Origin: Epithemia pelagica
Lineage: Eukaryota; Protista; Bacillariophyta
NCBI GenBank assembly: GCA_946965045.2
Contig: OX337237.1
Coordinates: 2,914,001 to 2,978,000, forward strand
Direction of reading: 5' to 3'
Length of the DNA: 64,000 bases
A program made the translations under genes and the position numbers. The notes beneath the pieces were generated by a model. That model was given only the letters and a program-made list of their open reading frames with translations. It did no database searches and was not told the origin of the DNA. Of the stretch, positions 879 through 63,461 are shown in pieces; within the stretch, counting starts at the first letter, position 1, and every line of letters begins with the position of its first letter.

Positions 879-1038
879 TCAATTGTTTCCACACCAAAAT
901 CACGACACACATGCGACCCGACTACTCACCCCCTTGGGGAGGAAGACAAGACAAAGAGGCTCCAACAGCGCAAAAGCTCTCTATCGCTCTGCTATTGGAA
1001 TCCATAACCTTTTGTCGTCCATCGGCTTTTCATCATTC

Positions 1039-34628: not shown

Positions 34629-37600
34629 TCTCCGCCATTAACAGGCTCTCTTTGGCTATCTATGATTTGGATTGGATGGATGGAGACCTCTCCCCTGAAC
34701 GGTGATAGACGTTGGAACGCATTTTTTGGGGTGCGGCTCAGCATCTCGTTTTGTGCTAGGGAAACAGTCACCCCGCGCGGAAAAGCCGCAAGTTCGCGCA
34801 CCGGCTCAGATGCGTTCTCACAAAAATCTCAAAGGAACACACCACAAAAAAAACAAAAGATATACATACAACAAGTCGAAGGATTGATGGCGATCGATTC
34901 ACGAAGGCATGTCTAGTTTGACACAATGTTTCAAGTTGCGATTGTCGCTTCTACCTTTTTTCCAACTCTTCACCTTGTTCCGATGCGAGTTCCAAAAATG
35001 ACATTAATTAGCCCCCATATGTCATTGGTATGTCCGCTTGCTTTTGCTCAGTTGGCACATCTTCCAAGGCTCTCATGCGTTTCAAGCTCGCATCCGCATC
35101 CTCGTTCATTATGTTTCGATAGTTCAACCCAGTTAAGACAATGCAGGGAAAGTCAAACCGTTCCGTCTCACTCCAATAATTGTGCCTGAAGCGTTTCTGC
35201 TCAAATTGCGTCGCTACGCCTGCGCCAACTTCATCCACTCCTATAGCAAATAGTATCGCTGGCCAATGCATTGCTAGGTCCACCCCAGCAGCCTTGAAGG
35301 TTTCTTTTTCCTCATTCGTCAAAAAATATTCCACGTTCGCCTTGTGATGTGTCGTAGCGTTCTCAGCCCCTGTAAGACTTTGAAGCGTGTCCGAAACTCT
35401 GTTTTTGTCCTGAACGACAACGCCAACGAACGTGTCTTTTTTTACCCTAAGCGGGATGACTTTGTCAATGCCTCTGCGACCCTCTTCCACAACAATTGCT
35501 GCAGTTCGTCGATAAGCATACCGCAGTAAATCATGAGTGATTAGTGGTCCCTTGATTGATTTGGAAAGATACACAAAATGAGTAAAGCAGACCTCACCGT
35601 CAAGGTACGTCAGATATCGGGAAGCTTCACTCGATTGATTCTGTTTCTTTGCTTCGAGAAGGGCCTGCGAATCCGACCAATCAAGCCCTAGACGCTTCAA
35701 GATTGCGAGTTCGTTTTCTACATTAATTTCTTGAAGACCACTCGTCTCGAGCTTGTCAATCACTGTACCAAGATTGGCATCCTTTCTGTTGAACTGCTTC
35801 AAGTAGTCCTTGAGCTGTACCCCTTTGACTGTTCCACCGCCCATTGCTTTGTCCATTGCAAGCGTCATCAACAGCCGGACGATGAGTTCTCCTTTGTATC
35901 CTTTATCGACAACTCCGAATGCAAGAAACTCGTTCAACGTAGATATCATCTGCTGTATATTTTCGGCGTTGTTCATTAATTTTCTGGCAGCCACGGCCAA
36001 AACTGGCTCCGAAGGATATGTCACCGTCATGCTCATTCTATCCTCTGAAACGCTTAGCGCTGTACCCATGTGACATGCAACAAGGGATGGTGCGTACAAA
36101 CTTGTCGGTGAGATGGACAGGCACAATCGAACCGACAAAGCAGCCAACAGTTCTTCCTTCTTTGCGAGCTTGAAATCGCTCTCCATCGAATTGCGTAGTT
36201 TCATTATTGCATAATCAAGCAGAGAACTTGGAGCCAGTGACATTTTGCATGTAAGGAGAGCCTTCCATAGTGGACGACCCATTGAATACAAGATTAGCGG
36301 ATCATGGCATGCTTCAACGTTCTTGGCAAGTAGTGTGTCGCGATCATTGTTCACCCGAAAGCTAGATCCAAGGATAAAGGGCTTCAATGGCTTTTGATTA
36401 TTGTCATCATATCCAGCATAAGGCTTGAATGACGAATCTTGATTCTCGTCATCGTACCTCGAACAGGGCTTCCATGACGGATCTTCGGGAGACAAATACG
36501 TTATGGAGGAAAATGTGGACATGACAACAAAAAAAAGCCATTCCGACTCATCTGTAAACGTCTTGAACACGGCACGCAGGGCGCGGTAGAACGACACCCC
36601 GTCCGATGTGAATTTGTCCAAGAGCCATGATGCTTCATCAACAACAAAGATAATCTTCTTTTGACCAGTTGGCACCATGGATATCGCCGGTGGCTTGGTT
36701 TCGGTAAGCAGTGGAGAAATTTTTGGTGAGACGGAAACCGGGTTTTCCCCTGCAATCGCTCTGTTCAGAGCCACGCATATCTCCTGGTTGAGCGCATTTT
36801 CTAGCACTATCCTTGGGTACTTTGAGAAGTCCGACTCCTCAATCGTCACGTTCTTTGATGGGTAGGCTTTTTTGGAACTAAAGGTCCAGTAAACGACCTG
36901 ATAGTTCTCTGGCGGATGATCTTTCAAATGAGTAACGAGACGTGATTTCCCGTAGCCAGAGCTCTGAATGACCGCAAAAAACGGAGCGTTTTTTACGACA
37001 GATTCTTTCTTTCGTTGCAAGAAAATCTTCCGTTGCTCCTCAAGATGTCGTATGAATTCGAGATCATCCTCATGGCTTTCATAGTCCTGTCTAAATGCAC
37101 TTTCAGCAGAGTCTTGGGGTAAATCCGGACCAGGATCTGCCAAATCCATTTTTTCTCTTATCTCAAGAAACCTACCAATTCTAGAGCATAACCACTTGTC
37201 AGTCTCGGCGGTGATCGTTGAAGGAAATTTCCTATAAATCGAAATGCTCTTGCTTGTCTCCGGTGCCTTTTTCCAGTCCTCCGTGGTAGATTTTGCATCA
37301 TTATATGCCTTTTCCAAAATGCCAACGTACGACCACTGCTGAGACTGAGATGCTTCGACCTCGTTGGTGTCGATGAGACTACTGTAGTCGTACGGCGGCT
37401 GCCCCCGTTTGCTGCTTGTTTCTGTTATTCCCGATGTAGCATCGACCATATTGACGTCTTCTTCCTCTTCTTCCATTGCCAATTTCTCGCTTCCCTCGAC
37501 TGTTCGCTTGGACATGATGCTTTTGCACCAAAGATCGAAATTACACAAAAAATGAAAACATGACGTGAAAAATATGGAAGGGCGCCCCCCCTTTTCTATT
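34290..37600. repeat. Segment (sulfotransferase 5' end + upstream region + N1) duplicated at ~45038-48340
   Basis: Shared sequence such as gggaaacagtcaccccgcgcggaaaagccgcaagttcgcgc at ~34760 and ~45541, continuing through the NTPase gene. Confidence 0.88.
35008..37515 (-). CDS. Crinkler-type P-loop NTPase + REase-fold protein, copy N1 (835 aa from MSKRTV)
   Basis: Walker A-like IQSSGYGKSRL, Walker B IIFVVDEA, YSMGRPLW, YPSEPVLA, KGYKGELIVRLL, RGIDKVIP...VVQDKNR (candidate E...D...QxK nuclease motif). Confidence 0.78.
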   Translation of the reverse strand: MSKRTVEGSEKLAMEEEEEDVNMVDATSGITETSSKRGQPPYDYSSLIDTNEVEASQSQQWSYVGILEKAYNDAKSTTEDWKKAPETSKSISIYRKFPSTITAETDKWLCSRIGRFLEIREKMDLADPGPDLPQDSAESAFRQDYESHEDDLEFIRHLEEQRKIFLQRKKESVVKNAPFFAVIQSSGYGKSRLVTHLKDHPPENYQVVYWTFSSKKAYPSKNVTIEESDFSKYPRIVLENALNQEICVALNRAIAGENPVSVSPKISPLLTETKPPAISMVPTGQKKIIFVVDEASWLLDKFTSDGVSFYRALRAVFKTFTDESEWLFFVVMSTFSSITYLSPEDPSWKPCSRYDDENQDSSFKPYAGYDDNNQKPLKPFILGSSFRVNNDRDTLLAKNVEACHDPLILYSMGRPLWKALLTCKMSLAPSSLLDYAIMKLRNSMESDFKLAKKEELLAALSVRLCLSISPTSLYAPSLVACHMGTALSVSEDRMSMTVTYPSEPVLAVAARKLMNNAENIQQMISTLNEFLAFGVVDKGYKGELIVRLLMTLAMDKAMGGGTVKGVQLKDYLKQFNRKDANLGTVIDKLETSGLQEINVENELAILKRLGLDWSDSQALLEAKKQNQSSEASRYLTYLDGEVCFTHFVYLSKSIKGPLITHDLLRYAYRRTAAIVVEEGRRGIDKVIPLRVKKDTFVGVVVQDKNRVSDTLQSLTGAENATTHHKANVEYFLTNEEKETFKAAGVDLAMHWPAILFAIGVDEVGAGVATQFEQKRFRHNYWSETERFDFPCIVLTGLNYRNIMNEDADASLKRMRALEDVPTEQKQADIPMTYGG

Positions 37601-38228
37601 GGGGTAGGGGCGGTCTCTTCGTTGCTCGTCGTTCGCATGCAATACATAAAAATGTAATAGCACAGGGGATGTAACAGGGGTTGCCACCAAGGTGTAATTT
37701 GGCCCACTTTTCGATATCGGTCGTTCTTCGTTACTTTCGCTGATTCCCCCCCCCATATTTCCTGACATCACGACTTTACCGCGCGTTCGTGGATTCCCCT
37801 TCTAACAAACAACTATTGTACGAGATTCAACGTCATCAAAAAGCCGTCAAAAATCCGGCTTTTCGACTGAGTTCAGTATGAACGATGTCGGGTAGATCGT
37901 TTAGATGGTGTCTGGGGTGGAAATTTAAACAATGACTGCAAAACAGACATAGTCATCTGACCATCGATCAGGAAGTACAATGAGAAATTTGGACAGGGAT
38001 TTGAGCGTTAACTATGATAGAAATAAGATATCAGAATATACAGAGTTGTACATTTTATGATGTGTTCGGGTCATTTTGTTGACTGTAAACCGCGCAGGGT
38101 CATAAGTCGATTAACTGTACAATTCATAAATATATCTATTGTAATAGACAAATATCGTGATTTTCCCAACCAATAACAAATGACTTTTACAAGCAGTGGA
38201 GTGATGGGGTACGAAGAAAAGAGGACGT

Positions 38229-38258
38229 CAGTAATCAGTAATCAGTAATCAGTAATCA
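38229..38258 (+). repeat. (CAGTAAT)4 microsatellite
   Basis: cagtaat x4 read directly. Confidence 0.9.
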
Positions 38259-38418
38259 TGAATGGCATTGCGTTTTGAGGTGTTGCGTTTGCGTTATCAT
38301 TGATCATATTAGCCATTCCCCTTGCAACTTGGAGTCCTAGAGGGGGCTGGGACTACCTACGCTAGGTTGCTTCGTGTCGCATGCGCTGATGCTGCTCACC
38401 CATGCGAATCCAGGGTGA

Positions 38419-39253
38419 GGGTTGGTCTTAACAAGCGTGAAATTTCACACATTTCACACTTTCTGCCTACGTGGTCTGACGTTGCTGTGAAATTTGATGA
38501 AATTCACAAATCTGCTCTCCAGGGCTCTTTTCACATCGAACAATATTTCACACAGAGGTCTATGGGTTCTAGGAGAGAGAAAGTTTGGGATTCTCTAGAC
38601 TATGCCGAACACCGACCATTGAAATCCAAAATGCTCGTACGATTCCAAACAACAATCAAACACAATCGTCCACCATGACGGACCCTCCTCCTGCACCTTT
38701 CCAAAATGATGGGCCTCAGAGGACCAAAGGACCAAAGGACCAACAGGGTGAAAAAACAACAAAGAGGAACGAGGGAGAGACACCTTTAGGAATTCCACAC
38801 TTCACCCTTCACCTCCCACAACAACGACCACGACAGTCTTTCCGCCCTCCTATGCACAGGATGGCAACTTCACCCATGCCACAGCAGTTCCCCAGCACTT
38901 GATCTATACTTCAAATCTCTATTGACATACATTAACAATTCTATTGTAGCTTCTTTTGTGCAGAGAAAAATCCCTTGAGTAGTCATACTAGTTCGTCCTT
39001 TCCTAGAAGGAAGAAGGAGATATTAGTCCTACAATGATGGACAAAAAGGTTTCCTTGTCCCTGCATCTTGATTCATGAAAATGGTTTTGCTACGGCAGTG
39101 GCACCGTTGTACTTGTACGGGGAGTGGTGGGAGGGTCGGTGTGAAAACATTTCACATCGTTTAGACCCTAGGATTTCACGTCTAAAAACTGTGACAAACC
39201 GAAGGTGTTTTAGTGTGAAACATGTGAAATTTCACGCTCGTTAAGACCAGCCC
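38419..39253. mobile_element. Non-autonomous DNA transposon (MITE), PIF/Harbinger-like, 835 bp
   Basis: 42-bp TIRs (38419-38460 and 39212-39253, 38/42 match), GGG...CCC termini, flanking TGA at 38416-38418 and 39254-39256 (3-bp TSD), repeated subterminal GTGAAA/TTTCAC, no transposase ORF. Confidence 0.85.
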
Positions 39254-39634
39254 TGAGCGATCAGCGCTGATCAGACTCGCGTGGTCACGGCGGGTCAGAG
39301 CTATATCACACTCCCATAGGAATACTGAATACTGAACTCAGCCGTCCTTCGCCTTAAGCGATTCAATTCCCTAATTTTTAAGAATCCAGGGAATTACGGG
39401 CGAAATCTAACTGAATTGGAAGGTTTCGGACGACGTAAAAACGAGAGAAAGAACGCGTAGATACGTGCGACTAAAAGGATACCGAGAGACCCAGAATGAG
39501 AAGGCAGGAAGAATGACCAGCATCTTCTAGTGGCTTTTCGGCTCGAGATCCTGAAGCTCCAGCCCGGCGGTCGCGTTTGACGCTGAGGCTGGATCATATC
39601 CTATCAGTGTTTGATTCTAGAGTGGACGCTGACA

Positions 39635-42600
39635 TACTCCTTCCCTCTGGACCATTATTAGTTGTGCCATTATGGATACTCTGGAATTACATGGGACCAA
39701 TGTGTCATTTACCGATCCCTTCTTCTTCAAGGAAGTTACTCGTATTATCAACGGCTTTGTTGATGACACCACAATTTGGGCCAACCAATTTGCGGACGAA
39801 CTTGCCCCAGCCGGCCACCAGTCAACCTACTCAGCTACCGAGTCGACGCGCAACCTGGAGACTCTAGTTGCCAATGCACAGTCCCTTGCACAGCAGTGGG
39901 AAAATCTTCTCTGGGCGACGGGTGGCATGCTTGAATTACCCAAATGCCTTTACTACGTCCTACACTGGTATTTCTCTCCCAACGGTCAGCCCTGTCTTGC
40001 ATCCACTGCCCAAATTTCACCACGGATCTCTCTGGTTGAAAGTGCTACGGGTAACACTCCTCCTATTCCGTTCCTCGAGCCCCATACTGCACACAAAACA
40101 TTAGGCGTGATGGTCAGTCCTTCTGGCTCGATGACTGCCCAATTTTCCCGCATTGCCTAGCAGAGCCGTAACCACATCTCCATCCTTCGCAGTCGACCGA
40201 TCCCACCTATGGAAGCGTGGATTTATTACCGCTCTGTGCTCCTGCCATCCATTCACTACTCCTTGCCAGCGACATCATTCAGCATTCGAGATGCCGCCAA
40301 ACTTGATGCACTGACCTGTGGACAACTCCTAAATGCTTTCGGTTTTCATCGCAACTTTCCCCGTTGTTTGGTGTACGCGCCAAAGACTCAGGGAGGTTTG
40401 GGTTTCACCGCCACCTGGACCGAACAGGGCCTGCAACACGTCCGCACCCTACTGGAACATGGCCGCAGCCCTGCTGGGAGTAAACTCCATGACACCCTCC
40501 ATCTTACGATTGCTCTGCCCCCTGACGGACTGCACTACTGCCTTACCTCACTTGCCGCCTGGTTGGGTCGCCACTCTCCGTGATTTTTTAGCTGCGATGA
40601 ATGCCTCGGTTAGTTGGCCCAGTGCCTGTCCCAAAATCGTTCCTCGGCGCGAGCATGACCGCATCCTCATGGACGATGCATGCTCCGGTTCCTGGTCTCC
40701 TTCCGACATCTGCCGGATCAATGCCTGCCGGCTGTTTCTGCGTGTGGAGTGTTTGTCGGACATCTGCTCTATTGCTGGCAAACATTTGCTTCCTATGGGA
40801 CCAGACTGGTGGATTAGTCCCAACACGTTATCCCAGCCCCGTGACTCTTGGCCCAAACAAGGCCTTCCTGATCAAGCTACCTGGCACCTTTTCCGTCGTT
40901 TTCTTCGTACCACCTACTGTTTTCACTCGAGGTCTTCGACATTGCGCCTTCCACTGGGCCAATGGTATGACACCCATCACTACCGGGTGTGGCCTTCTTA
41001 CTTTGATCACGATCTTCAGGGGATTGTGGTCCACACCAGTGACCACCGCTGGACTACACCATACCTCGTCCACCCTCACCAGAATCCAGACATGTGCGTG
41101 GTCTGCCCGACTCCATTTTGTGAAACCACTTCTGAGGAACTCCCTCCCGGTATGACACCTTGTGATCTTCCCTCCCAATGGTCCGTCCCCTTTCCCCGTC
41201 CACTCCCAGCTCTCCCGTCTCCGTCCACAGTTCTGTCGGATTCCGCCATGTCTTTACCTACCCTCAGTGAGTTTTCGACCTTCTCCCAGTATCTCGAGTG
41301 TCTGCCAGGCATTGTCCGTCAAGTTCTTGGTTCGGTTCAGTTCCTTCCTACCTTGATTCGCCAACCCACCATCTCCGACCTCCTTCCTCAGTGTCACCCT
41401 TCTCTCCTTGTTTGTGCTGATGGCGCCTCTGACACCCGTCACGGCGCCTATACATGGCTAGTTGCTACCCAGTCCGGTCGCCCTTTAGTAATTGGTTCCG
41501 CTCCTCTTCCATGCGGGCATCACGACATCTTTCGGGCCGAGAGTCTTGGCCTGTTGGCCGCGGTTTGGTTTCTCCATCATTACTGCCGATTTCACGTTCT
41601 CCACTTTGGTCATACTATTTCTGTGCTCAGCGATTCTGCTTACGTTCTTCGACGTGTCCGGTCCCTGCTTCCTCATCCGTCTGACACCTGGTATCCCCTC
41701 ACTTACTCTGCAGCTCATGCCGACGTGGTGACTGGCATCGTTTTGGCCGTCCAACGGGTGCCTGAACCGGGAGGCTTCAAGTTTCATCACCTCACCAAAC
41801 TTTCTGGCCAGCACGCTGCTCTTCTCCACCGTCGCTGCCACTTGGGTGCAACACGAATCCTCTCCGATGTCCGCTTTGGTGTTCTGAAGCCTCCCCCGTT
41901 CCCCCGTTCCTCCCTTTACCACATTGTCCACTTTATGTGCGCCATCACAATCAACCACTCTGCAGTCGTGAGGGCGTTACTCTCCGAATTGATCTGGCCA
42001 CTCAGTCCACTCGGCAATATTTCTGTGACAGGTTTCAATGGTCCCTTTGCGATTACCATGACGTTGACTGGCCTGCCTTTGGCAAGGCCCGCCAGCTGTG
42101 TTCTTCTATCCATCCTTTCACTACTAAGTTGGTCTCCGGTTGGCTTCCGGTCAATGCCAAACAATCCCGTGAGGAGCCCGGCGTTTCTCCCCTATGCTCT
42201 CTGTGCCACCGCCACGTTGAAATCATCGACCACATGCTGCTTTGCCCCGCCCGTGTGGAATGGCGGGTCCAGTTTCTCGACCGCCTAGCGACTTTCCTCC
42301 GCCAGCAAGGCACTTCTATTCCAGTCCGTCATCTTTTACTTTGGGGCATCACTGACTACTTTCAAATGTCTTCCGCTGGATCTGCGCCGTCCCCGACTGC
42401 TCCTCCCTTTCTGGCTTAATCTCGAATCGGGTGGTCCCTGTTCATTCGTGGTTTGATCTCCCGACAATGGATGCTCTTGCAACACTCCGGCTGCTCCTCC
42501 AGCCCTACCGCCAATCTCCTGGCCGGGCGCCTTATCCAGTTTGTGTGGACCTCCGTACATCATCTTTGGTTGCTCCGTAATGAACACGTTCACCGTCTTG

Positions 42601-42992
42601 TCCCCAATGTCGGGTCTGCTCGTGAGAGGGACAAGTTACATCAGTCTATTCGCGAACTCTACCAACTGGCTGAACAGTGCGACGCTGCCGATCGGGATTT
42701 GTTTTCTGTTTCTTTGGAAGAGCAGCTCCAACGTCCAAATTCATCCCATCGCTACTGGCTACGGACATTCTCTCAACCTATTCGAACGGCTGTCCGCGAT
42801 GCGTCGTTCCGCCTGCGCCACCAATGTCAGGACATCCGTCCATCCTTCCTAACCTCGGTGCTCTTCTCTGTCTCTCTTGATCTGTCTCATCGCTCTTGGT
42901 CTCCAAGCGCCGTGATGTCGGGCGCTCTTCTCCTGGTCACCCTGGAACTAGCTAGCTTGACATTAATAGGATTTCACATTATTATTATTATT
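39635..42992 (+). mobile_element. 5'-truncated, disrupted non-LTR retrotransposon (RT C-half + RNase H + C-terminal Cys/His region)
   Basis: GFVDDTTIW (RT catalytic), HKTLGV, RCLVYAPKTQGGLG, RLFLRVECLSDI, RNase H VCADGAS...FRAESLG...VLSDS, CSLCHRHVEIIDHMLLC. 3' (ATT)5 tail. TSD (T)AGAGTGGACGCTGACA at 39618-39634 and 42992-43008. TAG at 40158 plus frameshifts near 40520 and 41930. Confidence 0.92.
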
Positions 42993-43371
42993 AGAGTGGA
43001 CGCTGACACCCAGCCGGGTGCACAAGCCGATGCAGAGTTGGTCGTAGGCTTGGAAGAGGAGGAACACGGAATGGCAGTGGACAGCCTTCTAGCTAGCCAT
43101 GAAGACACCGACCAGCGGGCTATACCCCCCAGGTGGAGACTGTACCGGAGGGAAACGAAGACTCGGAGGTCGGGGTCTCAGACCACAGTGAAGCCACAGC
43201 GGCAAATGGGCAAGTCCTGGATGAAAGTGATGGAGGCACCACCGTCAACATGACCACGTTCGTGGATCTCTGTTCGGACGACCTATGCCGCGTCCTGTTC
43301 ATTCGAACGTACAGCAGGGGCACTCGGTAGAAGGCAGTATGTGGTGACTTCATACGAAAAGAGGACACAAA

Positions 43372-43596
43372 GCCAAACGCTTAATCGGTGCTAACAAACA
43401 CCGGGTGGTGCCGTGTGCCAAACGCTTAATCGGTGCTAACAAACACCGGGTGGCGCCGTGTGCCAAACGCTTAATCGGTGCTAACAAACACCGGGTGGTG
43501 CCGTGTGCCAAACGCTTAATCGGTGCTAACAAACACCGGGTGGCGCCGTGTGCCAAACGCTTAATCGGTGCTAACAAACACCGGGCGGCGCCGTGT
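43372..43596 (+). repeat. 45-bp minisatellite, 5 copies, reading CAKRLIGANKHRV(V/A)P in one frame
   Basis: Units start at 43372, 43417, 43462, 43507 and 43552 (gccaaacgcttaatcggtgctaacaaacaccgggYggYgccgtgt); no spacers. Confidence 0.95.
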
Positions 43597-43610
43597 TTCT
43601 ACAACAACTG

Positions 43611-43635
43611 CCCCCCCCCCCCCCCCCCCCCCCCC
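43611..43635 (+). repeat. C25 homopolymer
   Basis: Read directly, 14 bp after the minisatellite. Confidence 0.9.
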
Positions 43636-45037
43636 GAAGAGGGTTTTTGGTGGTTACGGACGGGCAAGTTGAGGGAGTGTTTCTCAGTCCTGCTGTGGGG
43701 CAAGCCCAATTGGAACAGCGAGATGCGTGATTAATGGAACGCCTTGCTGGACTACCAAGACGCTCTCAAGAATTGGAGGAGGAAATGGGCCTCTCTGGCA
43801 CGCCCGTGAACGATACCCTCCCCGACTTGGAAGTGGCCCCCGTGGAGGAGGAACCTCCTCAGGGCGTAGGAAGGAAGTGATCTGGGCAAGCAGCACGTGA
43901 ACGGCCGGCCCGAAGTTTGCAAATCAATACGACAGTGGGCCGTGGTACTGCCCAAGAGACGGCCTCCTCCATTCCAACCGATTATTGGGCATATGGGCTG
44001 GTCCACACCAGTGGAGTCCATCTGGCTGTGGCTGGACCATGAAGCGCAGTTGGCAGATTTTCTATGCACGGGGTGGACGATTTGCACCATGTTCACTACC
44101 CCACAACCCCACAAGACTCGGCAGGCCGGACAGCAAGGATGTTCTCCAGAATTACCCTAGGACTGGACGTCGGCAAGAGCAGATTGATATCATCTCCCTT
44201 GATAGCAAGGATGACGCTAGGATGGGCACAAGAGGTGACGGGGCTCCGAACCGTCGAAGATTGATAGCGGCGCGACAGTCTCCCTCATCACGTTGCCCGA
44301 GTGGTTGCATCAAATATGACAATGACGACGGGGAGTCTGAAGATGACAAAGTTTGGAGGGATGGGAGCAGTCTGGTTGTGTCCCGGACCCGGAGGACCCG
44401 TCTACAGGTACAGCCAAACAACTGTTCGGAGTGAACATCAATGATATGGCAGGGATTGACAAACTACTGCTCCCACTGGATGTGGTCGATCGACAGGAAC
44501 AAGAACCAAGATAGTTGCATTTTCATCATGGTAGCACAGGTAGTCGTATCTCCAGCGGATGCGCATACCTGGCTCCAGCAGAGACCTCTATCTCCAGCCG
44601 TACCTTGCTCAAGCAGAGATGAGCTGTTGCGGGACCGGCCTCTAAAAAGTACTGGTAGATAAGGGACTCCTGACACGAACTCAAATTCTTGAAAAAAGGA
44701 ACAATTCCACTGCCACAAAAGTTCCGCAACTTGACTTTTTCAGAAGAAAACGATGACTTAAGGTCAGAAACTAAGTTCTTGACTTCCACAATAATGCTAG
44801 AAGCCACAGAACACGGTGGAAGGTCCGAGTTCAGAACTTGACTTCGTGAAAAACAGTAAGTCAAAGTTGAAAATGAAAGTTTTCAATTGAACTTGAATGT
44901 GATGAAGTTACTCATGGTGCTCTCTAACTTGATTTCACTGAGAAAAGTCATTGGATCTCGGCTTGAAATGTAAAACAGTCAAGTCGAACTTCAACACCCT
45001 GGTTGCGTTGTATCACTGAACTCAGCCGTTCCATCCC

Positions 45038-48246: not shown

Positions 48247-48271
48247 GATGCTTTTGCACCAAAGATCGAAA

Positions 48272-53632: not shown

Positions 53633-56146
53633 TTATCTCCCATATGTCATCGGTATATCCGCTTGCTTTTGCTCAGTTGGCACATCTTCCAAGGCTCTGA
53701 TGCGTTTCAAGCTCGCATCAGCATCCTCGTTCATTAAGTTTAGATAGTTCAACCCAGTTAAGACAATGCAGGGAAAGTCAAACCGTTCCGTCTCACTCCA
53801 ATAATTGTGCCTGAAGCGTTTCTGCTCAAATTGCGTCGCTACGCCTGCGCCAACTTCATCCACTCCTATAGCAAATAGTATCGCTGGCCAATGCATTGCT
53901 AGGTCCACCCCAGCAGCCTTGAAGGTTTCTTTTTCCTCATTCGTCAAAAAATATTCGACGTTCGCCTTGTGATGTGTCGTAGCGTTCTCAGCCCCTGTAA
54001 GACTTTGAAGCGTGTCCGAAACTCTGTTTTTGTCCTGAACGACAACGCCAACGAATGTGTCTTTTTCTACCCTTAGCGGGATGACTTTGTCAATGCCTCT
54101 GCGACCCTCTTCCACAACAATTGCTGCAGTTCGTCGATAAGCATACCGCAGTAAATCATGAGTGATTAGTGGTCCCTTGATTGATTTGGAAAGATACACA
54201 AAATGAGTAAAGCAGACCTGACCGTCAAGGTACGTCAGATATCGGGAAGCTTCACTCGATTGATTCTGTTTCTTTGCTTCGAGAAGGGCCTGCGAATCCG
54301 ACCAATCAAGCCCTAGACGCTTCAAGATTGCGAGTTCGTTTTCTACATTAATTTCTTGAAGACCACTCGTCTCGAGCTTGTCAATCACTGTACCAAGATT
54401 GGCATCCTTTCTGTTGAACTGCTTCAAGTAGTCCTTGAGCTGTACCCCTTTGACTGTTCCACCGCCCATTGCTTTGTCCATTGCAAGCGTCATCAACAGC
54501 CGGACGATGAGTTCTCCTTTGTATCCTTTATCGACAACTCCGAATGCAAGAAACTCGTTCAACGTAGATATCATCCGCTGTATATTTTCGGCGTTGTTCA
54601 TTAATTTTCTGGCAGCCACGGCCAAAACTGGCTCTGAAGGATATGTCACCGTCATGCTCATTCTATCCTCTGAAACGCTTAGCGCTGTACCCATGTGACA
54701 TGCAACAAGGGATGGTGCGTACAAACTTGTCGGTGAGATGGACAGGCACAATCGAACCGACAAAGCAGCCAACAGTTCTTCCTTCTTTGCGAGCTTGAAA
54801 TCGCTCTCCATCGAATTGCGTAGTTTCATTATTGCATAATCAAGCAGAGAACTTGGAGCCAGTGACATTTTGCATGTAAGGAGAGCCTTCCATAGTGGAC
54901 GACCCATTGAATACAAGATTAGCGGATCATGGCATGCTTCAACGTTCTTGGCAAGAAGTGTGTCGCGATCATTGTTCACCCGAAAGCTAGATCCAAGGAT
55001 AAAGGGCTTCAATGGCTTTTGATTATTGTCATCATATCCAGCATAAGGCTTGAATGACGAATCTTGATTCTCGTCATCGTACCTCAAACAGGGCTTCCAT
55101 GACGGATCTTCGGGAGACAAATACGTTATGGAGGAAAATGTGGACATGACAACAAAAAATAGCCATTCCGACTCATCTGTAAACGTCTTGAACACGGCAC
55201 GCAGGGCGCGGTAGAACGACACCCCGTCCGATGTGAATTTGTCCAAGAGCCATGATGCTTCATCAACAACAAAGATAATCTTCTTTTGACCAGGTACTAG
55301 CTTGTGTATCTCCGGTGGCTTGGTGTAGGTTGACAGAGGAGAAATTGTTGTGGAACCGGAACCCGGGTTTTCCCCTGCAATCGCTTGGTTCAAAGCCACG
55401 CATATCTCCTTGTAGAGCGCTTGTTCTAGCACTTTCCTTGGGTACTCTGAGAAATCTGAGTCGTCAATCGTTACGTTCTTTGATGGGTAGGCTTTCTTGG
55501 AAGCAAAGGTCCAGTAAACGACCTGATAGTCCTTGGGCGGATAGGCTTTCAAATGAGTAACGAGACGTGATTTCCCGTAGCCAGAGCTCTGAATGACCGC
55601 AAAAAACGGAGCGTTTTTCACGATAGATTTTGCCTTCCGTTGCAAGAAAATCTTCCGTTGCTCCTCAAGATGTCGTATGAATTCGAGATCATCCTCATGG
55701 CTTTCATAGTCCTGTCTAAATGCACTTTCAGCAAAGTCTTGCGGTAAATCCGGAACAGAATCCGCGAAATCCTTTTTTTCTCTTATCTCAAGAAACCTGT
55801 AAATTCTAGAGGACAACAATAACCAATCATTATTCTCGACGGTGATCGCTGAAGAAAGTTTCGCGACCACCACAAGACTCTTGTTTTCCTTCGATATCTT
55901 GTTCCAATTCTTTGTGGAAGATTTTGCATCATTATATGCTTTTTCCAAAATGTCCACGTACGACCGCTGCTGAGACTGATATGCTTCGCCCTTGTCGGTG
56001 TCGATGAGACTACTGTAGTCGTACGGCGGATGCCCCCGTTTGCTGCTTGTTTCTGTTGTTCCCGATGTAGCATCGACCATATTGACGTCTTCTTCCTCTT
56101 CTTCCATTGCCAATTTCTCGCTTCCCTCGACTGTTCGCTTGGACAT
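53633..56146 (-). CDS. Crinkler-type NTPase + REase-fold protein, copy N3 (837 aa)
   Basis: Same motifs; most divergent N-terminal block. Confidence 0.78.
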   Translation of the reverse strand: MSKRTVEGSEKLAMEEEEEDVNMVDATSGTTETSSKRGHPPYDYSSLIDTDKGEAYQSQQRSYVDILEKAYNDAKSSTKNWNKISKENKSLVVVAKLSSAITVENNDWLLLSSRIYRFLEIREKKDFADSVPDLPQDFAESAFRQDYESHEDDLEFIRHLEEQRKIFLQRKAKSIVKNAPFFAVIQSSGYGKSRLVTHLKAYPPKDYQVVYWTFASKKAYPSKNVTIDDSDFSEYPRKVLEQALYKEICVALNQAIAGENPGSGSTTISPLSTYTKPPEIHKLVPGQKKIIFVVDEASWLLDKFTSDGVSFYRALRAVFKTFTDESEWLFFVVMSTFSSITYLSPEDPSWKPCLRYDDENQDSSFKPYAGYDDNNQKPLKPFILGSSFRVNNDRDTLLAKNVEACHDPLILYSMGRPLWKALLTCKMSLAPSSLLDYAIMKLRNSMESDFKLAKKEELLAALSVRLCLSISPTSLYAPSLVACHMGTALSVSEDRMSMTVTYPSEPVLAVAARKLMNNAENIQRMISTLNEFLAFGVVDKGYKGELIVRLLMTLAMDKAMGGGTVKGVQLKDYLKQFNRKDANLGTVIDKLETSGLQEINVENELAILKRLGLDWSDSQALLEAKKQNQSSEASRYLTYLDGQVCFTHFVYLSKSIKGPLITHDLLRYAYRRTAAIVVEEGRRGIDKVIPLRVEKDTFVGVVVQDKNRVSDTLQSLTGAENATTHHKANVEYFLTNEEKETFKAAGVDLAMHWPAILFAIGVDEVGAGVATQFEQKRFRHNYWSETERFDFPCIVLTGLNYLNLMNEDADASLKRIRALEDVPTEQKQADIPMTYGR

Positions 56147-56171
56147 GATGCTTTTGCACCAAAGATCGAAA

Positions 56172-57461
56172 TTACATGTCGATGAACAAAAAATGAACAC
56201 ATGACGTGAAAAATATGAAAGGGCGCCCCCCCCCTTTTCTATTGTTGGGTGGCAGCTCTCCGTTCACTGACTCTTGAGGAATGGATGGGTAATGAACTGG
56301 GACGGTGCGAAGCATTTGATTCGCATCCATTCTTTTACAATTGTGTTTAAATTCGGCGTACATCTCCATGACCAGATCGTTGCGTTCGGATCGACTCGTG
56401 TTTCCAGTTGTAGCCATCAAGGGAAAGTATCCATAGTAGGCACATTTAAACTTTTGGACAAGGCCCAAAAGCCAAATTCTTAATAATGGGGAGGAAACAG
56501 TTCAATAATCGCTGATCCTGTTTTCATGAAAAGGAGATTGGTTGAGGCAGCACCGTGTGGAAGAATTACAATGGACTGTCGAGACCACCATGTAAATTGC
56601 TCTATTGGCTTCATATCTTCCATGTTGGCACGTTCCACAATACAATCCGGGTACATTTGGCGAATAGCTCGCTCCAGTTGGTCCATGTTCCCAATTTTGC
56701 GATTGTTCAATCGATTGACCAAGCCGATCCGGAGAACAGTCTCATCCATAAGGGCCACGTTGCTGCTGCTGGAATTGGTGGTTCCGCTAATGTTGTTGTG
56801 GTTTCGATACGTTTTTGTTTGAAAGAGACGATTTCGCAACGCTTGTCCATGTTGGGGATCCCAAAAAAATCGACGGAGAGCGGCATCATTACGGTGTGGT
56901 CGAAACAAGTAATAGGTATGAGTGGCAGTGTTTCGTGGCAAGTCTCGTTTTCGTGTGGTGCCCAACTGGTGGTCCTTCTTTTGTTGTTGTTGTTGTTGTT
57001 TTTCGGGGCCGAGGGAGACAATTGTACTCGTTTGTGGTAACTCTGATAGATTGAACTCTCTGTAGTCGTAGGTACACTTCATCAACTTGACAATCAAGGC
57101 CGTTCGCCGATCTTTGGCAACTGGACCCACACCAGCCAAGTGGTTGAGGTTGACACGGCACTGAAACGTGTCCTCGTCGTTGTCGTCGTTGGACAGTTGA
57201 GAAGAGGCTGTTGCTTGGAGTAGTGCTTGCTGCGACTGAAAGAAACTCCAACATTGACTCAAGGCTTGGAGTGCATGCGGGAAATGATAGAACATATACG
57301 TCGACTCCTTGTCCAAAAAGCACATCAAGGCAATGGCCCTCCTGTTCGGCTGCTGCAGTTCTGTTGCTAGTATGGTGGCATGCTCCTGTGAGCCTTGCAA
57401 TTCCGTGTTATTGTTGCTTCTCATCCCAACGAATCTTGGTGATGCTGGTACTACCGGTGGA
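56172..57461 (-). pseudogene. GT61 pseudogene copy, additionally 5'-deleted
   Basis: Same TAA (56480-56482) and frameshift as the 48272-49719 copy. TM-coding 5' end absent beyond the junction at 57457-57461. Confidence 0.82.
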
Positions 57462-58181
57462 AGGAAAGGTAAGATGAGACTATCCTAGTTGATCATCGTG
57501 GGTTGTGGCGGCTGTCGTCATCGTCGTTCTGGTTGTGGGTACCCTACTTTGAGAGCCTTGGCCGAAACGATCGACATGTTGTTATTGTTGTTCTCGTAAT
57601 GGTTCGTTTGGGGGCATTCGCAAGAGGACTCTTGGATTGGGAATGGTGTTTGTTGTTGCGTGAAGGATGGAATACAAGGAGTCGGGGATGGTGACCAAAT
57701 GCACCTGTTGTGGTTGTGGTTGCACGGCCGAACCCAGACCGGAACAGCAGCAAACCTGTCACGGGCCCAAGTAGCCGCCACAGCCGAGCGGACCCATGTC
57801 GTTCTTTTGTTGGTGGTGCTGTCGAACTTGTGAGGACGGAACCAGGACATTGGATCGCACCAATCTTCCAGTGGCTTGCCTTTGTATACGGACGTATCGA
57901 ATACAGCCCAACGATCGCAACACACCTCTCTACGCCACCAAAGGACTGTTGTTGTCAACTGTTTCCGGGGTTGGTGAAATGCGAGATCGCGGCATAGATC
58001 CAATGCTACGTCCTTCGTCAATCTAGGTATATCTTCGACCGATAGGTGATCTAAAAGCGACCTGTAGATGTGATGGTATGTACTCGTAGGATGATCGTGA
58101 ATTGGCTCGCTCCCAACCAGAAATCAAGAAACGTGGTTTCCACAAGACACACATGCAAACTCGGCACAAAAAGACAGAACC

Positions 58182-59723
58182 ATGAGGAGGAGGCGCCGGT
58201 CCCAATGTGATCGGTCCACGACAAAAGCGACGCCGTCTTTTTCCAGAAGAAGCCTTTTGCGGTGGCGAACTGTACTTGCCGCCACAATTGCAGTGGCATT
58301 GACAGGAATCTTTGTCACATCTCGTCAATTCCTTCTGCAACTCTCCTCCTCGTCGCCTTTTATGGCGGGGGACAGCCACGAAACAGAACACGCTCCACCA
58401 GCAGTAGAAACACCGCCAGCATTCGTAGAAGACGCTCCACCAGTAGTAGAAGCGACAGGATTCGTTGGGATGAGAAGCAAGAGCAACAACAAGAGCACGG
58501 AGTTGCAAGGTTCACAAGAGGATACCACCACACCAGCAACGTCCTACAACAAGAGCAATAGCAACAACAACACGGAGTTGCAAGTTCCCCAGCATCATCC
58601 TGTTTCGTCACAACAAGCACCAGAGAACCATCTGCCGAGCACAAAGACCATTGCCTTGTGGTGCTTTTTGGACGACAAGTCAACGTATATTTTCCCTCAC
58701 TTTCCGCATGCACTGCAAGCCTTGAGTCAGTGTTGGAGTTTCTTTCAGTCCCAGCAGGCACAACTTCAGGCCACAGCCTCTTCTCAACTCCTCTCGAACG
58801 ACGACACGTTTCAGTGTCATATCAACCTCAACCGCGTGGGACGTTTGGGACAAGTCAAAAGGGATTGGCGAGCGGCCTTGATTGTCAAGTTGATGAAATG
58901 TACCTACGACTACAAAGAGTTCAATCTGTCACAGCTACCACAGAATAGTACGGTTATCTCACTAATAAAGCGTCCGGCCGATCAACCACAAGACCAAAAG
59001 CAACAACCAAAGGGAAAGAAGCACACCAAGCCAAAACCAGAGTTGCCTCGGAACAACGCAACGCATACCTATTACTTGTTTCGACCACACCGTAATGATG
59101 CCGCGTATTATCGATTCTTTTGGGATCCTCAACATGGACAAGTGCTGCGAAATCGACTCTTTGAAACAAAAAGCTATCGAAACCACAACAACATTAGCAA
59201 AACCACCAACTCCAGTAGCAACAGTGTGGTCCTTATGGATGAGACTGTTCTCCGAATTGGATTGGTCAACCGATTGGGTAATCGAAAAGTGGGGAACATG
59301 GACCAACTGCAGAAAGCTATACAGCGAATGTACCCGGATTGTATTGTGGAACGTGCCAATATGGAAGGCATGACGCCTCTACAACAATTTACGTGGTGGT
59401 CTCGACAGTCCATTGTCATTCTTCCACACGGTGCTGGCTCGACTAATCTCGTGTTTCTGAAAGCAGGATCGGCCATTATTGAAATTTTCCCACCGCACTA
59501 TTACTGGAGGGGATTTTGGGCCTTGTCCAAAACGTTAAATGGGCACTACTATGGATACTTTCCCTTGATGGCGACAACTGGAAACACGAGTCGATCCGAA
59601 CGCAACGATCTGGTCATGGAGATGTACGCCGAATTTAAACAAAGTTGTAAACAATTGGATGCGTATCGAATCCTTCGTAGCGTCCCAGTTATCAGCAACA
59701 ACAACAAACTTTTATTCCACTGA
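58182..59723 (+). CDS. GT61 glycosyltransferase, second copy (protein identical to 50840..52381)
   Basis: Identical translation in the track; offset 7342 bp. Confidence 0.82.
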   Translation: MRRRRRSQCDRSTTKATPSFSRRSLLRWRTVLAATIAVALTGIFVTSRQFLLQLSSSSPFMAGDSHETEHAPPAVETPPAFVEDAPPVVEATGFVGMRSKSNNKSTELQGSQEDTTTPATSYNKSNSNNNTELQVPQHHPVSSQQAPENHLPSTKTIALWCFLDDKSTYIFPHFPHALQALSQCWSFFQSQQAQLQATASSQLLSNDDTFQCHINLNRVGRLGQVKRDWRAALIVKLMKCTYDYKEFNLSQLPQNSTVISLIKRPADQPQDQKQQPKGKKHTKPKPELPRNNATHTYYLFRPHRNDAAYYRFFWDPQHGQVLRNRLFETKSYRNHNNISKTTNSSSNSVVLMDETVLRIGLVNRLGNRKVGNMDQLQKAIQRMYPDCIVERANMEGMTPLQQFTWWSRQSIVILPHGAGSTNLVFLKAGSAIIEIFPPHYYWRGFWALSKTLNGHYYGYFPLMATTGNTSRSERNDLVMEMYAEFKQSCKQLDAYRILRSVPVISNNNKLLFH

Positions 59724-60974
59724 ATCAAAGTGACGGGAACGTGTTATCGTGGTCCTATGTACCTCAAGTCTCTAAAATGGTATCCTGGTGTTGGTCGGCT
59801 CAACACGTTTTGCCAAACAAGGACAATCTGGTCCATCACTTTGACGACGACCCGCCACAATGGCTCATGGATGAATACTCGTGAGGCACCAGTCGAGATG
59901 GAACTGTTTGGATTCTAAATGTGGTTTATCCGCCGATATGGTCCGCCGACGTCCTCACCACCGCCAAGGACGACTCCGACGACGATCCTGTGGCAAAGAA
60001 TATGCTCCTCTTTATTCCACGTGTTGGGGGCTCTGTTGGAAGGAGCAATATATTATATAGACCACGTATGGTGGTTTCTTCCCTTGCATGCGTCTCCCGA
60101 AATCTAGAGCCGAACGTGCCGTGATCGTTCTCCTCAATTGGTGGGATAAAGCTATCATTGATAGCACGGTTTCACGCATGGACCCGCATTCGCTCACCAG
60201 ACACTGGTACACGTGGCATCCAGAAAACTGCTTCAGATAGTTCCTTGGGCCAAGGAAAAGAACAGCGCTGAATACGAGTAGAAGACCAAGAGACAAAACG
60301 AAGAGGAAGCAACCATGATGAACAGCTACCGAAATTGCTCTACTACTGCGACGCTTTATCGAAGACCAATCCGAGTTGCAACCAAGTGCACCATCATGTC
60401 GCAACAATCATATGGTTCATGGTGGTTTGGCGTCTTTTGTATTCTTTGGAATTTGGTTGAATTGCTGGTTGCTTGCCAACCAAAACCACTCGTTTCGACG
60501 CATGTCGAAAGAAGAGTGGACCGGTATAGGCTGTACGGTTATCGCATCCTGGCGAGAGAGATCGAGAATGAGAGAACCCATTTTTTGGTGGCTAAGTGCC
60601 TCGTTGCGACAAGGAAGATGTCGCCCCGCGCTCATAGGCCGCAAGCTCTCGTCGCGCCGGCTTGCGTCCCGTTTCTCACCAAAATCTGAAACAACATACC
60701 AAGAACCAAGACACCAAAAAACACAAGACTAAAAACTGACAGAAGATATAAGCAATATGCAACACCATGTCCCCTTGGAACGGAGGAAGCAGTGATGGCC
60801 ATCGCCAAAGATTCAATGAAAAAAGGCGCTGCTTCAAATGGCAGTGAGCCAACTACTTCGTGCGATCATTCCGCAGAGGGACAAAGGAACTCGAAGTTAA
60901 GGAAAACTTACTATCGTTTCTCCTATGTCCTACTCTTCACCTTGTTCCGATGCGAGGTCCAAAAATGACATTAA

Positions 60975-63461
60975 TTATCTCCCATATGTCATCGGTATGT
61001 CCGCTTGCTTTTGCTCAGTTGGCACATCTTCCAAGGCTCTGATGCGTTTCAAGCTCGCATCAGCATCCTCGTTCATTAAGTTAAGATAGTTCAACCCAGT
61101 TAAGACAATGCAGGGAAAGTCAAAGCGTTCCGTCTCACTCCAATAATTGTGCCTGAAGCGTTTCTGCTCAAATTGCGTCGCTACGCCTGCGCCAACATCA
61201 TCCACTCCTATAGCAAATAGTATCGCTGGCCAATGCATTGCTAGGTCCACCCCAGCAGCCTTGAAGGTTTCTTTTTCCTCATTCGTCAAAAAATATTCGA
61301 CGTTCGCCTTGTGATGTGTCGTAGCGTTCTCAGCCCCTGTAAGACTTTGAAGCGTGTCCGAAACTCTGTTTTTGTCCTGAACGACAACGCCAACGAATGT
61401 GTCTTTTTCTACCCTTAGCGGGATGACTTTGTCAATGCCTCTGCGACCCTCTTCCACAACAATTGCTGCAGTTCGTCGATAAGCATACCGCAGTAAATCA
61501 TGAGTGATTAGTGGTCCCTTGATTGATTTGGAAAGATACACAAAATGAGTAAAGCAGACCTGACCGTCAAAGTACGTCAGATATCGGGAAGCTTCACTCG
61601 ATTGATTCTGTTTCTTTGCTTCGAGAAGGGCCTTTGAATCCGACCAATCAAGCTCTAGACGCTTCAAGATTGCGAGTTCGTTTTCTACATTAATTTCTTG
61701 AAGACCACTCGTCTCGAGCTTGTCAATCACTGTACCAAGATTGGCATCCTTTCTGTTGAACTGCTTCAAGTAGTCCTTGAGCTGTACCCCTTTGACTGTT
61801 CCACCGCCCATTGCTTTGTCCATTGCAAGCGTCATCAATAACCGGACGATGAGTTCTCCTTTGTATCCTTTATCGACAACTCCGAATGCAAGAAACTCGT
61901 TCAACGTAGATATCATCCGCTGTATATTTTCGGCGTTGTTCATTAATTTTCTGGCAGCCACGGCCAAAACTGGCTCTGAAGGATATGTCACCGTCATGCT
62001 CATTCTATCCTCTGAAACGCTTAGCGCTGTACCCATGTGACATGCAACAAGGGATGGTGCGTACAAACTTGTCGGTGAGATGGACAGGCACAATCGAACC
62101 GACAACGCAGCCAACAATTCTTCCTTCTTTGCAAGCTGGACATCGCTCTCCATCGAATTGCGTAGTTTCATTATTGCATAATCAAGCAGAGAACTTGGAG
62201 CCAGTGACATTTTGCATGTAAGGAGAGCCTTCCATAGAGGACGACCCATTGAATACAAGATTAGCGGATCATGGCATGCTTCAACGTTCTTGGCAAGTAG
62301 TGTGTCGCGATCATTGTTCACCCGAAAGCTAGATCCAAGGATAAAGGGCTTCAATGGCTTTTGATTATTGTCATCATATCCAGCATAAGGCTTGAATGAC
62401 GAATCTTGATTCTCGTCATCGTACCTCGAACAGGGCTTCCATGACGGATCTTCGGGAGACAAATACGTTATGGAGGAAAATGTGGACATGACAACAAAAA
62501 AAAGCCATTCCGACTCATCTGTAAACGTCTTGAACACGGCACGCAGGGCGCGGTAGAACGACACCCCGTCCGATGTGAATTTGTCCAAGAGCCATGATGC
62601 TTCATCAACAACAAAGATAATCTTATTTTGACCAGTTGGCACCTTGGATATCGCCGGTGGCTTGGTGTCGGTAAGCAGTGGAGAAATTTTTGGTGAGACG
62701 GAACCCGGGTTTTCCCCTGCAATCGCTTGGTTCAAAGCCACGCATATCTCCTGGTGGAGCGCATTTTCTAGCACTATCCTTGGGTACTTTGAGAAGTCCG
62801 ACTCCTCAATCGTCACGTTCTTTGATGGGTAGGCTTTCTTGGAACTAAAGGTCCAGTAAACGACCTGATAGTTCTCGGGCGGATGATCTTTCAAATGAGT
62901 AACGAGACGTGATTTCCCGTAGCCAGAGCTCTGAATGACCGCAAAAAACGGAGCGTTTTTTACGACAGATTCTTTCTTTCGTTGCAAGAAAATCTTCCGT
63001 TGCTCCTCAAGATGTCGTATGAATTCGAGATCATCCTCATGGCTTTCATAGTCCAGTCTAAATGCACTTTCAGCAGAGTCTTGGGCCAAATCCTTTTTTT
63101 CTCTTATCTCAAGAAACCTGCCAATTCTAGAGCATAACCACTTGTCAGTCTCGGCGGTGATCGTTGAAGGAAATTTCCTGGCAATCAAAATGATCTTGTG
63201 TGACTCCGATGCCTTGTTCCAGTCCTCCACGGTCGATTTTGCATCATTATATGCCTTTTCCAAAATGCCCACGCACGACCACTGCTGAGACTGAGATGCT
63301 TCGACCTCGTCGGTGTCGATGAGACTACTGTAGTCGTACGGCGGATGCCCCCGTTTGCTGCTTGTTTCTGTTGTTCCGGATGTAGCATCGACCATATTGA
63401 CGTCTTCCTCCTCTTCTTCCATTGCCAATTTCTCGCTTCCCTCGACTGTTCGCTTGGACAT
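60975..63461 (-). CDS. Crinkler-type NTPase + REase-fold protein, copy N4 (828 aa, N1/N2 mosaic)
   Basis: Same motifs; intact ORF. Confidence 0.78.
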   Translation of the reverse strand: MSKRTVEGSEKLAMEEEEEDVNMVDATSGTTETSSKRGHPPYDYSSLIDTDEVEASQSQQWSCVGILEKAYNDAKSTVEDWNKASESHKIILIARKFPSTITAETDKWLCSRIGRFLEIREKKDLAQDSAESAFRLDYESHEDDLEFIRHLEEQRKIFLQRKKESVVKNAPFFAVIQSSGYGKSRLVTHLKDHPPENYQVVYWTFSSKKAYPSKNVTIEESDFSKYPRIVLENALHQEICVALNQAIAGENPGSVSPKISPLLTDTKPPAISKVPTGQNKIIFVVDEASWLLDKFTSDGVSFYRALRAVFKTFTDESEWLFFVVMSTFSSITYLSPEDPSWKPCSRYDDENQDSSFKPYAGYDDNNQKPLKPFILGSSFRVNNDRDTLLAKNVEACHDPLILYSMGRPLWKALLTCKMSLAPSSLLDYAIMKLRNSMESDVQLAKKEELLAALSVRLCLSISPTSLYAPSLVACHMGTALSVSEDRMSMTVTYPSEPVLAVAARKLMNNAENIQRMISTLNEFLAFGVVDKGYKGELIVRLLMTLAMDKAMGGGTVKGVQLKDYLKQFNRKDANLGTVIDKLETSGLQEINVENELAILKRLELDWSDSKALLEAKKQNQSSEASRYLTYFDGQVCFTHFVYLSKSIKGPLITHDLLRYAYRRTAAIVVEEGRRGIDKVIPLRVEKDTFVGVVVQDKNRVSDTLQSLTGAENATTHHKANVEYFLTNEEKETFKAAGVDLAMHWPAILFAIGVDDVGAGVATQFEQKRFRHNYWSETERFDFPCIVLTGLNYLNLMNEDADASLKRIRALEDVPTEQKQADIPMTYGR

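Follow-up and report, generated by a model that had tools for sequence, protein, structure and literature searches.

Four closely related genes of a diatom, each coding for a predicted nucleoside triphosphatase (NTPase) joined to a probable nuclease, are nearly the same over most of their length and differ in an N-terminal part whose short blocks appear to have been reassorted among the copies, which raises the question of how such an array arose. The genes, N1 to N4, lie in a window of 64,000 nucleotides (nt) of Epithemia pelagica, namely positions 2914001–2978000 of contig 10 in an assembly of 60.5 Mb and 23 contigs. The original prediction, drawn from the letters of this window, saw in them a diversifying sensor or effector locus with hypervariable N-termini. 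Our analysis points to a plainer answer. The array is probably a small tandem family of intronless, non-secreted genes of the Crinkler-RHS (CR) type, shaped by old divergence, concerted evolution, unequal crossover and short gene conversion.

The list of open reading frames (ORFs) and a check of starts and stops confirm that all four predicted genes are present and intact (Table 1). Each begins with MSKRTVEG, ends in a single terminal stop and gives no indication of introns, and full-length transcripts of the related diatom Amphiprora align with them end to end and without gaps at 61–62% identity. A six-frame search of the whole assembly recovered these four as the only close copies, together with one additional relative, 24% identical and 223 kb distant. 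This distant paralogue (contig 10, 2690060–2692228) is an intact gene of 722 amino acids (aa) that shares the MSKR start; its 24% identity spans the NTPase and the linker, and the C-terminal nuclease motifs are unaligned in BLASTP.

The protein alignment contains every N-terminal block that had been described: the EVEAS and KGEAY forms of block 1, the three types of block 2, the types of block 3, the 7-aa deletion of N2 and N4, and the segment between Walker A and Walker B that splits N1/N4 from N2/N3. The mosaic occupies codons ~51–290, and the remaining codons are 96–100% identical. The C-terminus, previously called almost invariant, is thus 96–100% identical in nucleotides and is itself a mosaic of low divergence. 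Informative-site patterns are spatially clustered along the coding-sequence (CDS) alignment of the four genes. In a PHI-like test of seven sequences (N1–N4 and three alleles of a second haplotype), the local incompatibility was 0.142 versus 0.298 ± 0.008 in permuted alignments, and 0 of 2000 permutations were as low. Recombination is strongly supported.

The second haplotype shows which copies are the recent mosaics. The 90% cluster of N1 holds eight proteins of one ENA assembly. Four of them, encoded on a 2.06-Mb contig, equal N1–N4 exactly (the N1 protein is identical to P0001), and three others are variants encoded on a 776-kb contig, ctg1321l, which is collinear with the window at 97.9–99.4% identity and carries three gene copies. 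Read as its reverse complement, ctg1321l follows the window over 37880–52348 and then jumps to 59689–63653, so that it has exactly one 7342-bp unit less. Its genes at the N1 and N4 positions have N1-type and N4-type N-termini, respectively, while the gene at the N2 position combines an N3-type N-terminus with an N2-type C-end. N4 had been proposed to be a recombinant reading N1/N2/N1/N2/N1, a view that does not hold, as the N4 allele of the other haplotype shares this arrangement; instead of N4, the copies that recombined recently are N2, with a tract derived from N4, and N3, best read as a crossover hybrid. Upstream of the N1 allele, by 135 bp, ctg1321l also carries an insertion of ~12 kb (274718–287074) with a MULE transposase (PF10551, PF21056) and hAT-dimerisation ORFs. 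In window terms the insertion lies at about 37650, where the window itself has 230 bp, and this is also where paralogue homology ends on the 5´ side.

Self-comparison shows that the array is a segmental tandem repeat with spacings of 10752, 7873 and 7342 bp. By sliding identity, N2 and N3 agree at 99–100% in their 5´ flanks, and N3 and N4 at 100% in their 3´ flanks. Flank homology between N1 and N4 is limited to ~140 bp 5´ of the ATG and ~45 bp past the stop, and N1 and N2 have in common only an older 3´ flank of 80–90% identity. These flank identities, together with the gene structures on ctg1321l, indicate that N3 is best read as a recent unequal-crossover hybrid, with ancestral N2 as the 5´ and N4 as the 3´ parent. 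The segments 50105–53631 and 57457–60973 are 99.66% identical; since this duplicated flank differs by 0.34%, compared with 0.6–2.1% between haplotypes, the four-copy state looks derived from three copies.

The N2 gene carries a second, shorter exchange. Within its tract, N2 has the N4 state at 62 of the 70 sites where the N2 allele of the other haplotype (h2_N2) and N4 differ; five of the remaining eight have the allele state, and N2 is allele-like beyond the tract limits. This patchiness fits heteroduplex repair or several events. The site clustering, the PHI-like test and the N2 tract all support the earlier suggestion that gene conversion has reshuffled the 5´ part of the genes, and the crossover proposed for N3 and the conversion in N2 would together produce the block-shuffled look of the array.

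Synonymous divergence (dS) and the dN/dS ratio (omega) were estimated by the Nei-Gojobori method for codons 51–135, 136–290 and 291–836. Between the three N-terminal types, dS is 0.12–0.27 and omega 0.63–1.28 in codons 51–135, and dS is 0.10–0.16 and omega 0.7–0.9 in codons 136–290. In codons 291–836, dS is 0.025–0.056 between paralogues (omega 0.17–0.31) and 0–0.033 between alleles (omega 0.38–0.48 where defined). The dS of codons 51–135 is 4–8 times the C-terminal value, and because synonymous sites are affected too, the N-terminal variation is old divergence and not hypermutation. Allelic pairs have a dS of 0 and 0–3 nonsynonymous changes in codons 51–135 (omega undefined), so the three types are stable between haplotypes and do not merit the name hypervariable. 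N-terminal hypermutation was rejected on the same ground, the alleles being synonymously identical there. In codons 291–836 the paralogue distance about equals the allele distance, with a dS of ~0.03, a hallmark of concerted evolution. The locus resembles known cases of concerted evolution with partial escape in this equality within the homogenised part, in its sharply bounded diverged segment, in the hybrid gene at the duplication junction and in the copy number that differs between haplotypes; apart from the patchy N2 tract it shows nothing unusual.

The domain architecture was examined on an AlphaFold2 model of N4 (mean pLDDT 81.8, pTM 0.81). Residues 1–40 are predicted to be disordered, helices occupy residues 56–163, and a helical region with short strands (residues 377–530) is placed between the NTPase and the nuclease. 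Acidic in composition, the first 40 residues contain no hydrophobic run or signal peptide, in agreement with the earlier statement that a signal peptide is absent. Foldseek with the whole model lists Avs3, CED-4, Apaf-1 and ZAR1 as the first matches (E 1.7e-4 to 1.7e-3), and archaeal ATPases and ORC/Cdc6 rank just below them. In VIA-align, residues 131–490 match NVL, ORC5, Pex1/6, TnsC (9.4), BrxC and Avs3 (9.0) with Z of 9–10. As these scores are equal for many AAA+ proteins, the model predicts a P-loop NTPase domain of the AAA+ fold, with Walker A and Walker B intact and no specific STAND signal. The stretches QSSGYGKS and VVDEAS do not vary among the diatom homologues and hardly vary among 61 homologues. 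The term NLR-like is not specifically supported: the NTPase matches AAA+ proteins in general, and a sensor domain of the repeat type is absent.

The C-terminal domain, folded alone, reached a pLDDT of 76 and has no strong structural match. PD-(D/E)xK nucleases make up nearly all of its top VIA-wide matches, at weak Z values of 2.7–4.1 (HamA 4.1, Can2 3.9, Cap4 3.7, LlaBIII 3.5), followed by DdmD, AspBHI, LmuA, MspJI and PaqCI. Foldseek with this domain gave no match below E 0.02, and the Atlas shape matches after the fungal family itself include the R.HinP1I, TnsA and PDDEXK_3 clusters, again weak (TM 0.25–0.27). In the model, E536 sits on a helix, D677 at the start of a strand and Q695xK697 at the end of a strand, as in the core of restriction endonucleases (REases), and QSSGxGKS, the DE of Walker B, GRPLW, YPSEP, KGxxGE, D677 and QxK are conserved across 61 homologues. 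The domain probably has a PD-(D/E)xK nuclease fold. Motif conservation and the VIA matches thus support the predicted combination of a P-loop NTPase with a probable REase-type nuclease, and the best explanation of the whole protein, as modelled, is a helical N-terminal domain of ~120 residues, an AAA+-fold P-loop NTPase, a helical linker and a C-terminal PD-(D/E)xK-type nuclease. Pfam and NCBIfam models found nothing in the diatom protein or its C-terminal domain and, in 28 fungal homologues, the Crinkler header in two only. The PF20147 ubiquitin-like (Ubl) Crinkler header has no match at E ≤ 0.1 in the diatom protein, and PDB sequences, searched with a profile, yielded nothing beyond marginal AAA+ matches (E 0.1–0.2).

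Crinkler-type NTPase-nuclease modules are mainly known as effectors of oomycetes and fungi. Homologues of N1–N4 include the Amphiprora transcripts at 61–62% identity, metagenomic proteins, presumably of diatoms, at 32–63%, and, with E from 1e-18 to 1e-4, numerous proteins of fungi and a single one of Selaginella. Some of the fungal homologues carry PF20147 (P0038, E 2.6e-7, and P0059, E 2.1e-4, in a single-sequence search); a profile search adds P0080, P0082 and P0090 and gives P0038 an E of 1e-181. These PF20147-bearing homologues bear out the kinship to fungal Crinkler-type proteins. A language-model look-up, taken as a lead only, has oomycete and basidiomycete clusters as neighbours. The Amphiprora MMETSP transcripts (P0002, P0071, P0072, P0074, P0003, P0004) represent at least three distinct versions that are 84–91% identical; their block-wise combinations, which extend over the full protein, are possibly assembler isoforms and were not used as evidence. 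On two metagenomic diatom-like contigs the homologue is single-copy within 10 kb and has different neighbours, and the tandem array is not conserved in these relatives.

The family profile has 57 matches in the E. pelagica assembly, in arrays on contigs 8, 9 and 10 and elsewhere. The array matches elsewhere in the genome have E of 1e-17 or weaker, far more distant than N1–N4 are among themselves; many of them hit the NTPase part and lie in open frames of 450–986 aa. The superfamily is much expanded in this genome, and the N1–N4 locus is a separate small subfamily.

The nearest known system is the CR module. According to the part of PMC5289972 that summarises Zhang et al. [quoted passage not shown] Descent from Tn7-type proteins has been suggested for them (10.1101/2025.07.27.667033, in the passage citing Zhang 2016). 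The diatom genes share with this module the domain order of P-loop NTPase, helical region and PD-(D/E)xK-type nuclease (the last being probable in the diatom), the homology to fungal proteins of which some are headed by PF20147, the multi-copy and recombining state, and a free-living eukaryotic host. They differ in that the N1–N4 proteins have neither the N-terminal Ubl header nor the LxLFLAK motif of Crinkler effectors, nor a signal peptide, in that the ~120-residue helical domain, which matches no family, takes the place of the header, and in that they have no known link to pathogenicity. The most fitting place for them is in the CR NTPase-REase family, as header-less or helical-header members, and not among the Crinkler effectors in the strict sense. 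A literature search found no description of such a gene in a diatom, as had been supposed, though whether Zhang et al. 2016 lists diatoms is not established.

Two other systems bear a more limited likeness. STAND and NLR proteins supply the first Foldseek matches, and Avs3 likewise couples an REase-type nuclease to an NTPase. However, ORC5, NVL, Pex1/6, TnsC and BrxC score equally, the diatom protein has no leucine-rich repeat, WD40 or TPR sensor but a nuclease-like C-terminal domain, and the nuclease of Avs3 is N-terminal. Tn7 TnsC aligns with the NTPase over 224 residues, and a TnsA-like cluster is found among the weak shape matches to the C-terminal domain; in contrast to TnsC and TnsA, the NTPase and nuclease of the diatom are fused in one eukaryotic protein, and unlike members of the Tn7 family the diatom unit has no transposase, TniQ or element ends.

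The following history would account for the array. Three old paralogues (N1, an ancestral N2 and N4) may have diverged to the dS of 0.12–0.27 that is seen in their N-terminal third. Conversion between paralogues would then have homogenised the ~140-bp promoter and both ends of the coding sequence, with 50 codons at the start and ~550 at the end, while codons 51–290, weakly constrained (omega ~1) and diverged by 15–25%, would mostly have escaped homogenisation and become three stable types. On the haplotype of the window, an unequal crossover between ancestral N2 and N4 would have added N3 and the 7.3-kb unit with its GT61 genes, and a patchy conversion of ~200 bp from N4 may then have overwritten part of N2. 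The proteins may act as NTP-regulated nucleases on intracellular nucleic acid. They could represent one branch of a large conflict-type repertoire (defence, toxin or selfish), with the N-terminal domain as a candidate targeting or partner-binding part.

The diversifying locus that the original prediction had in mind differs from this history in the role given to selection. Specificity would be set by the N-terminal domain and by the Walker A–B insert, both kept different by balancing or diversifying selection, conversion would make new combinations of them, and the locus would serve immunity, allorecognition or toxin-type conflict. Both haplotypes do retain three deeply diverged N-terminal types despite homogenised surroundings, and omega rises from 0.2–0.3 to 0.6–1.3 in a region that is modelled as structured helices. 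Every copy is intact, the copy number is polymorphic, the superfamily is expanded in arrays genome-wide, and the reading of CR-type modules as conflict proteins in the relevant part of PMC5289972 agrees with such a role. Yet omega is not above 1: in codons 51–135 it is indistinguishable from neutral, with no departure in either direction (binomial p 0.34–0.83), so that diversifying selection is not shown. Since synonymous sites have diverged more here too, age is enough to account for the variability. Conservation of the N-terminal segment is low in diatom homologues generally, as low constraint predicts, a divergence of 15–25% itself blocks homologous conversion without any need for selection, and a single recent event of N-terminal reshuffling, the N2 tract, is seen. 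We consider selection for diversity an unlikely explanation.

Two further explanations concern the array itself. It might be the product of its own activity, with the genes being the cargo or enzyme of a mobile element, a transposon-derived NTPase and nuclease that spreads itself. The homology of N1, N2 and N4, limited to the transcription unit with ~140 bp upstream and ~45 bp downstream, agrees with this, as do TnsC among the best NTPase matches (Z 9.4) with a TnsA-like cluster among the weak shape matches, the transposon fragments near the locus on the other haplotype and the descent of CR modules from prokaryotic transposon proteins that is thought likely in that part of PMC5289972. However, poly-A tails, terminal inverted repeats and target-site duplications are absent from the homology borders of the copies, the close copies all lie in one locus, and the unit has no transposase or integrase, its other genes being GT61 genes. 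The newest copy came with 4.8 kb of GT61 DNA and has its borders inside homologous genes, a hallmark of unequal crossover. As poly-A, inverted repeats and dispersed copies are all missing, retroposition or an origin from a mobile element was rejected, and we regard it as highly improbable. The four-copy array or its mosaic copies might instead be an artefact of assembly, caused by a misjoined or miscollapsed repeat or by a mixing of haplotypes. Repeat units that are 97–100% identical are hard for assemblers, and the Logan contigs, short assemblies of four read runs from one study, end at the repeat borders, including near the 57457–57461 junction. Nevertheless, ctg1321l runs cleanly collinear with the window except for exactly one unit, contigs from all four runs cover N3-type sequence at ≥99% identity, and the hybrid structure of N3 matches what a real unequal crossover predicts; the 2.06-Mb ENA contig also encodes the identical four proteins, though possibly from the same data. 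An artefact therefore has very little chance of being the right explanation.

The account of a tandem family under concerted evolution remains the probable one, and several points weigh against it. An omega of ~1 over confidently modelled helices could mask positive selection at some sites, and four to seven recombining sequences are too few to resolve such selection at the level of sites. The REase-fold scores are weak (VIA Z ≤4.1; Foldseek E ≥0.02; Atlas TM 0.25–0.29 to named nucleases), and no Pfam model matches the protein or its C-terminal domain. Expression in E. pelagica is unproven, none of its four read runs being recorded as RNA. The direction, duplication versus deletion, rests on relative divergence without an outgroup; ctg1321l and the window contig are possibly two strains and not two haplotypes of one cell; and the four-copy layout is unbridged by long reads, the short Logan contigs showing presence only.

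By itself the locus reveals no new mechanism, and it clearly exemplifies the usual evolution of tandem genes rather than a proven hypervariable immune locus. It is a small, fully intact diatom example in which two haplotypes record old duplication, concerted evolution, the escape of a segment, a recent crossover and a short conversion, and it can serve as a worked example of how a CR-type family evolves. With four genes and three N-terminal types, it also offers a tractable entry to the role of header-less CR proteins in algae. A bolder possibility, which we rate as distinctly unlikely, is that the diatom has in this array a polymorphic locus of self/non-self or antiviral specificity, in which selection keeps apart three ancient N-terminal recognition types on a homogenised AAA+-nuclease killing module. 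If this were true, occasional conversions like that of N2 would create new specificities, and the locus would be one arm of a CR-type repertoire of at least 30 genes, an intracellular immune or allorecognition system in diatoms.

The intervals N2–N3 and N3–N4 each contain two GT61 glycosyltransferase genes, one per strand. The neighbours had been described as decayed, which applies to the minus-strand copy that is cut from 379 to 314 aa, whereas both plus-strand ORFs are intact at 513 aa. GT61 genes and fragments, mutually 72–89% identical, interleave with the array over 48580–59723 and continue at window-extended positions 64841–72900.

Table 1. Coordinates of the array, its protein motifs, recombination features and neighbours. 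Positions refer to the window unless another scale is given.
Feature	Position	Strand	Details
N1 CDS	35008–37515	minus	835 aa plus stop (836 codons); N-terminal type a
N2 CDS	45760–48246	minus	828 aa plus stop (829 codons); type-c backbone with N4-derived patch
N3 CDS	53633–56146	minus	837 aa plus stop (838 codons); best read as hybrid, N2-ancestral 5´ part and N4-type 3´ end
N4 CDS	60975–63461	minus	828 aa plus stop (829 codons); N-terminal type b; copy used for structure model
Walker A (N4 residues 178–184)	62910–62930	minus	SSGYGKS; invariant in diatom family, nearly so in 61 homologues
Walker B (N4 residues 283–289)	62595–62615	minus	FVVDEAS; D286 and E287 invariant or nearly so
Putative PD-(D/E)xK core	61368–61871	minus	E536 in KGYKGEL, D677 in GIDKVIP, Q695-x-K697 in VVQDKN
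Deeply diverged region in N4	62619–63311	minus	Alignment codons 51–290; N-terminal helical domain and Walker A–B insert
Equivalent region in N1	36652–37365	minus	
Equivalent region in N2	47404–48096	minus	
Equivalent region in N3	55277–55996	minus	
Patchy conversion tract in N2	47869–48066	minus	Alignment CDS nt 181–405, including a 21-nt deletion
Site pattern	CDS nt 150–210		N1=N4 vs N2=N3
Site pattern	CDS nt 228–270		N1=N3 vs N2=N4
Site pattern	CDS nt 298–350		N1=N4 vs N2=N3
Site pattern	CDS nt 500–990		N1=N4 vs N2=N3
Site pattern	CDS nt 990–2070		Singletons only
Site pattern	CDS nt 2080–2511		N1=N2 vs N3=N4
Shared upstream sequence, ~140 bp	63462–63600	minus	Putative promoter and 5´ untranslated region; homogenised in all four copies
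Repeat unit, 7342 bp (N3 and GT61 genes)	52348–59689		Missing from alternative-haplotype contig; 53632–60973 in repeat register
GT61 ORF, 379 aa	48580–49719	minus	PF04577, E 3.9e-14
Copy of 379-aa GT61 ORF	56480–57424	minus	Shortened to 314 aa
540-bp indel	49565–50104 vs 57457–57461		Beside shortened minus-strand GT61 copy
GT61 ORF, 513 aa	50840–52381	plus	PF04577, E 3.5e-12
Copy of 513-aa GT61 ORF	58182–59723	plus	
Further profile-match arrays	contig 10, 496–590 kb and 2641–2648 kb		
Further profile-match array	contig 9, 353–507 kb		
Further profile-match array	contig 8, 394–544 kb		

Elsewhere in the window, a block at 40000–44000 is GC-rich (55% GC), and its GC skew and AT skew are both strongly negative. 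It contains a plus-strand ORF of 651 aa (40333–42288) that matches no Pfam or NCBIfam model and is 99% conserved in the other haplotype. A direct repeat of ~1.07 kb with 92% identity (2964–4031 and 4302–5363) is unrelated to the array.

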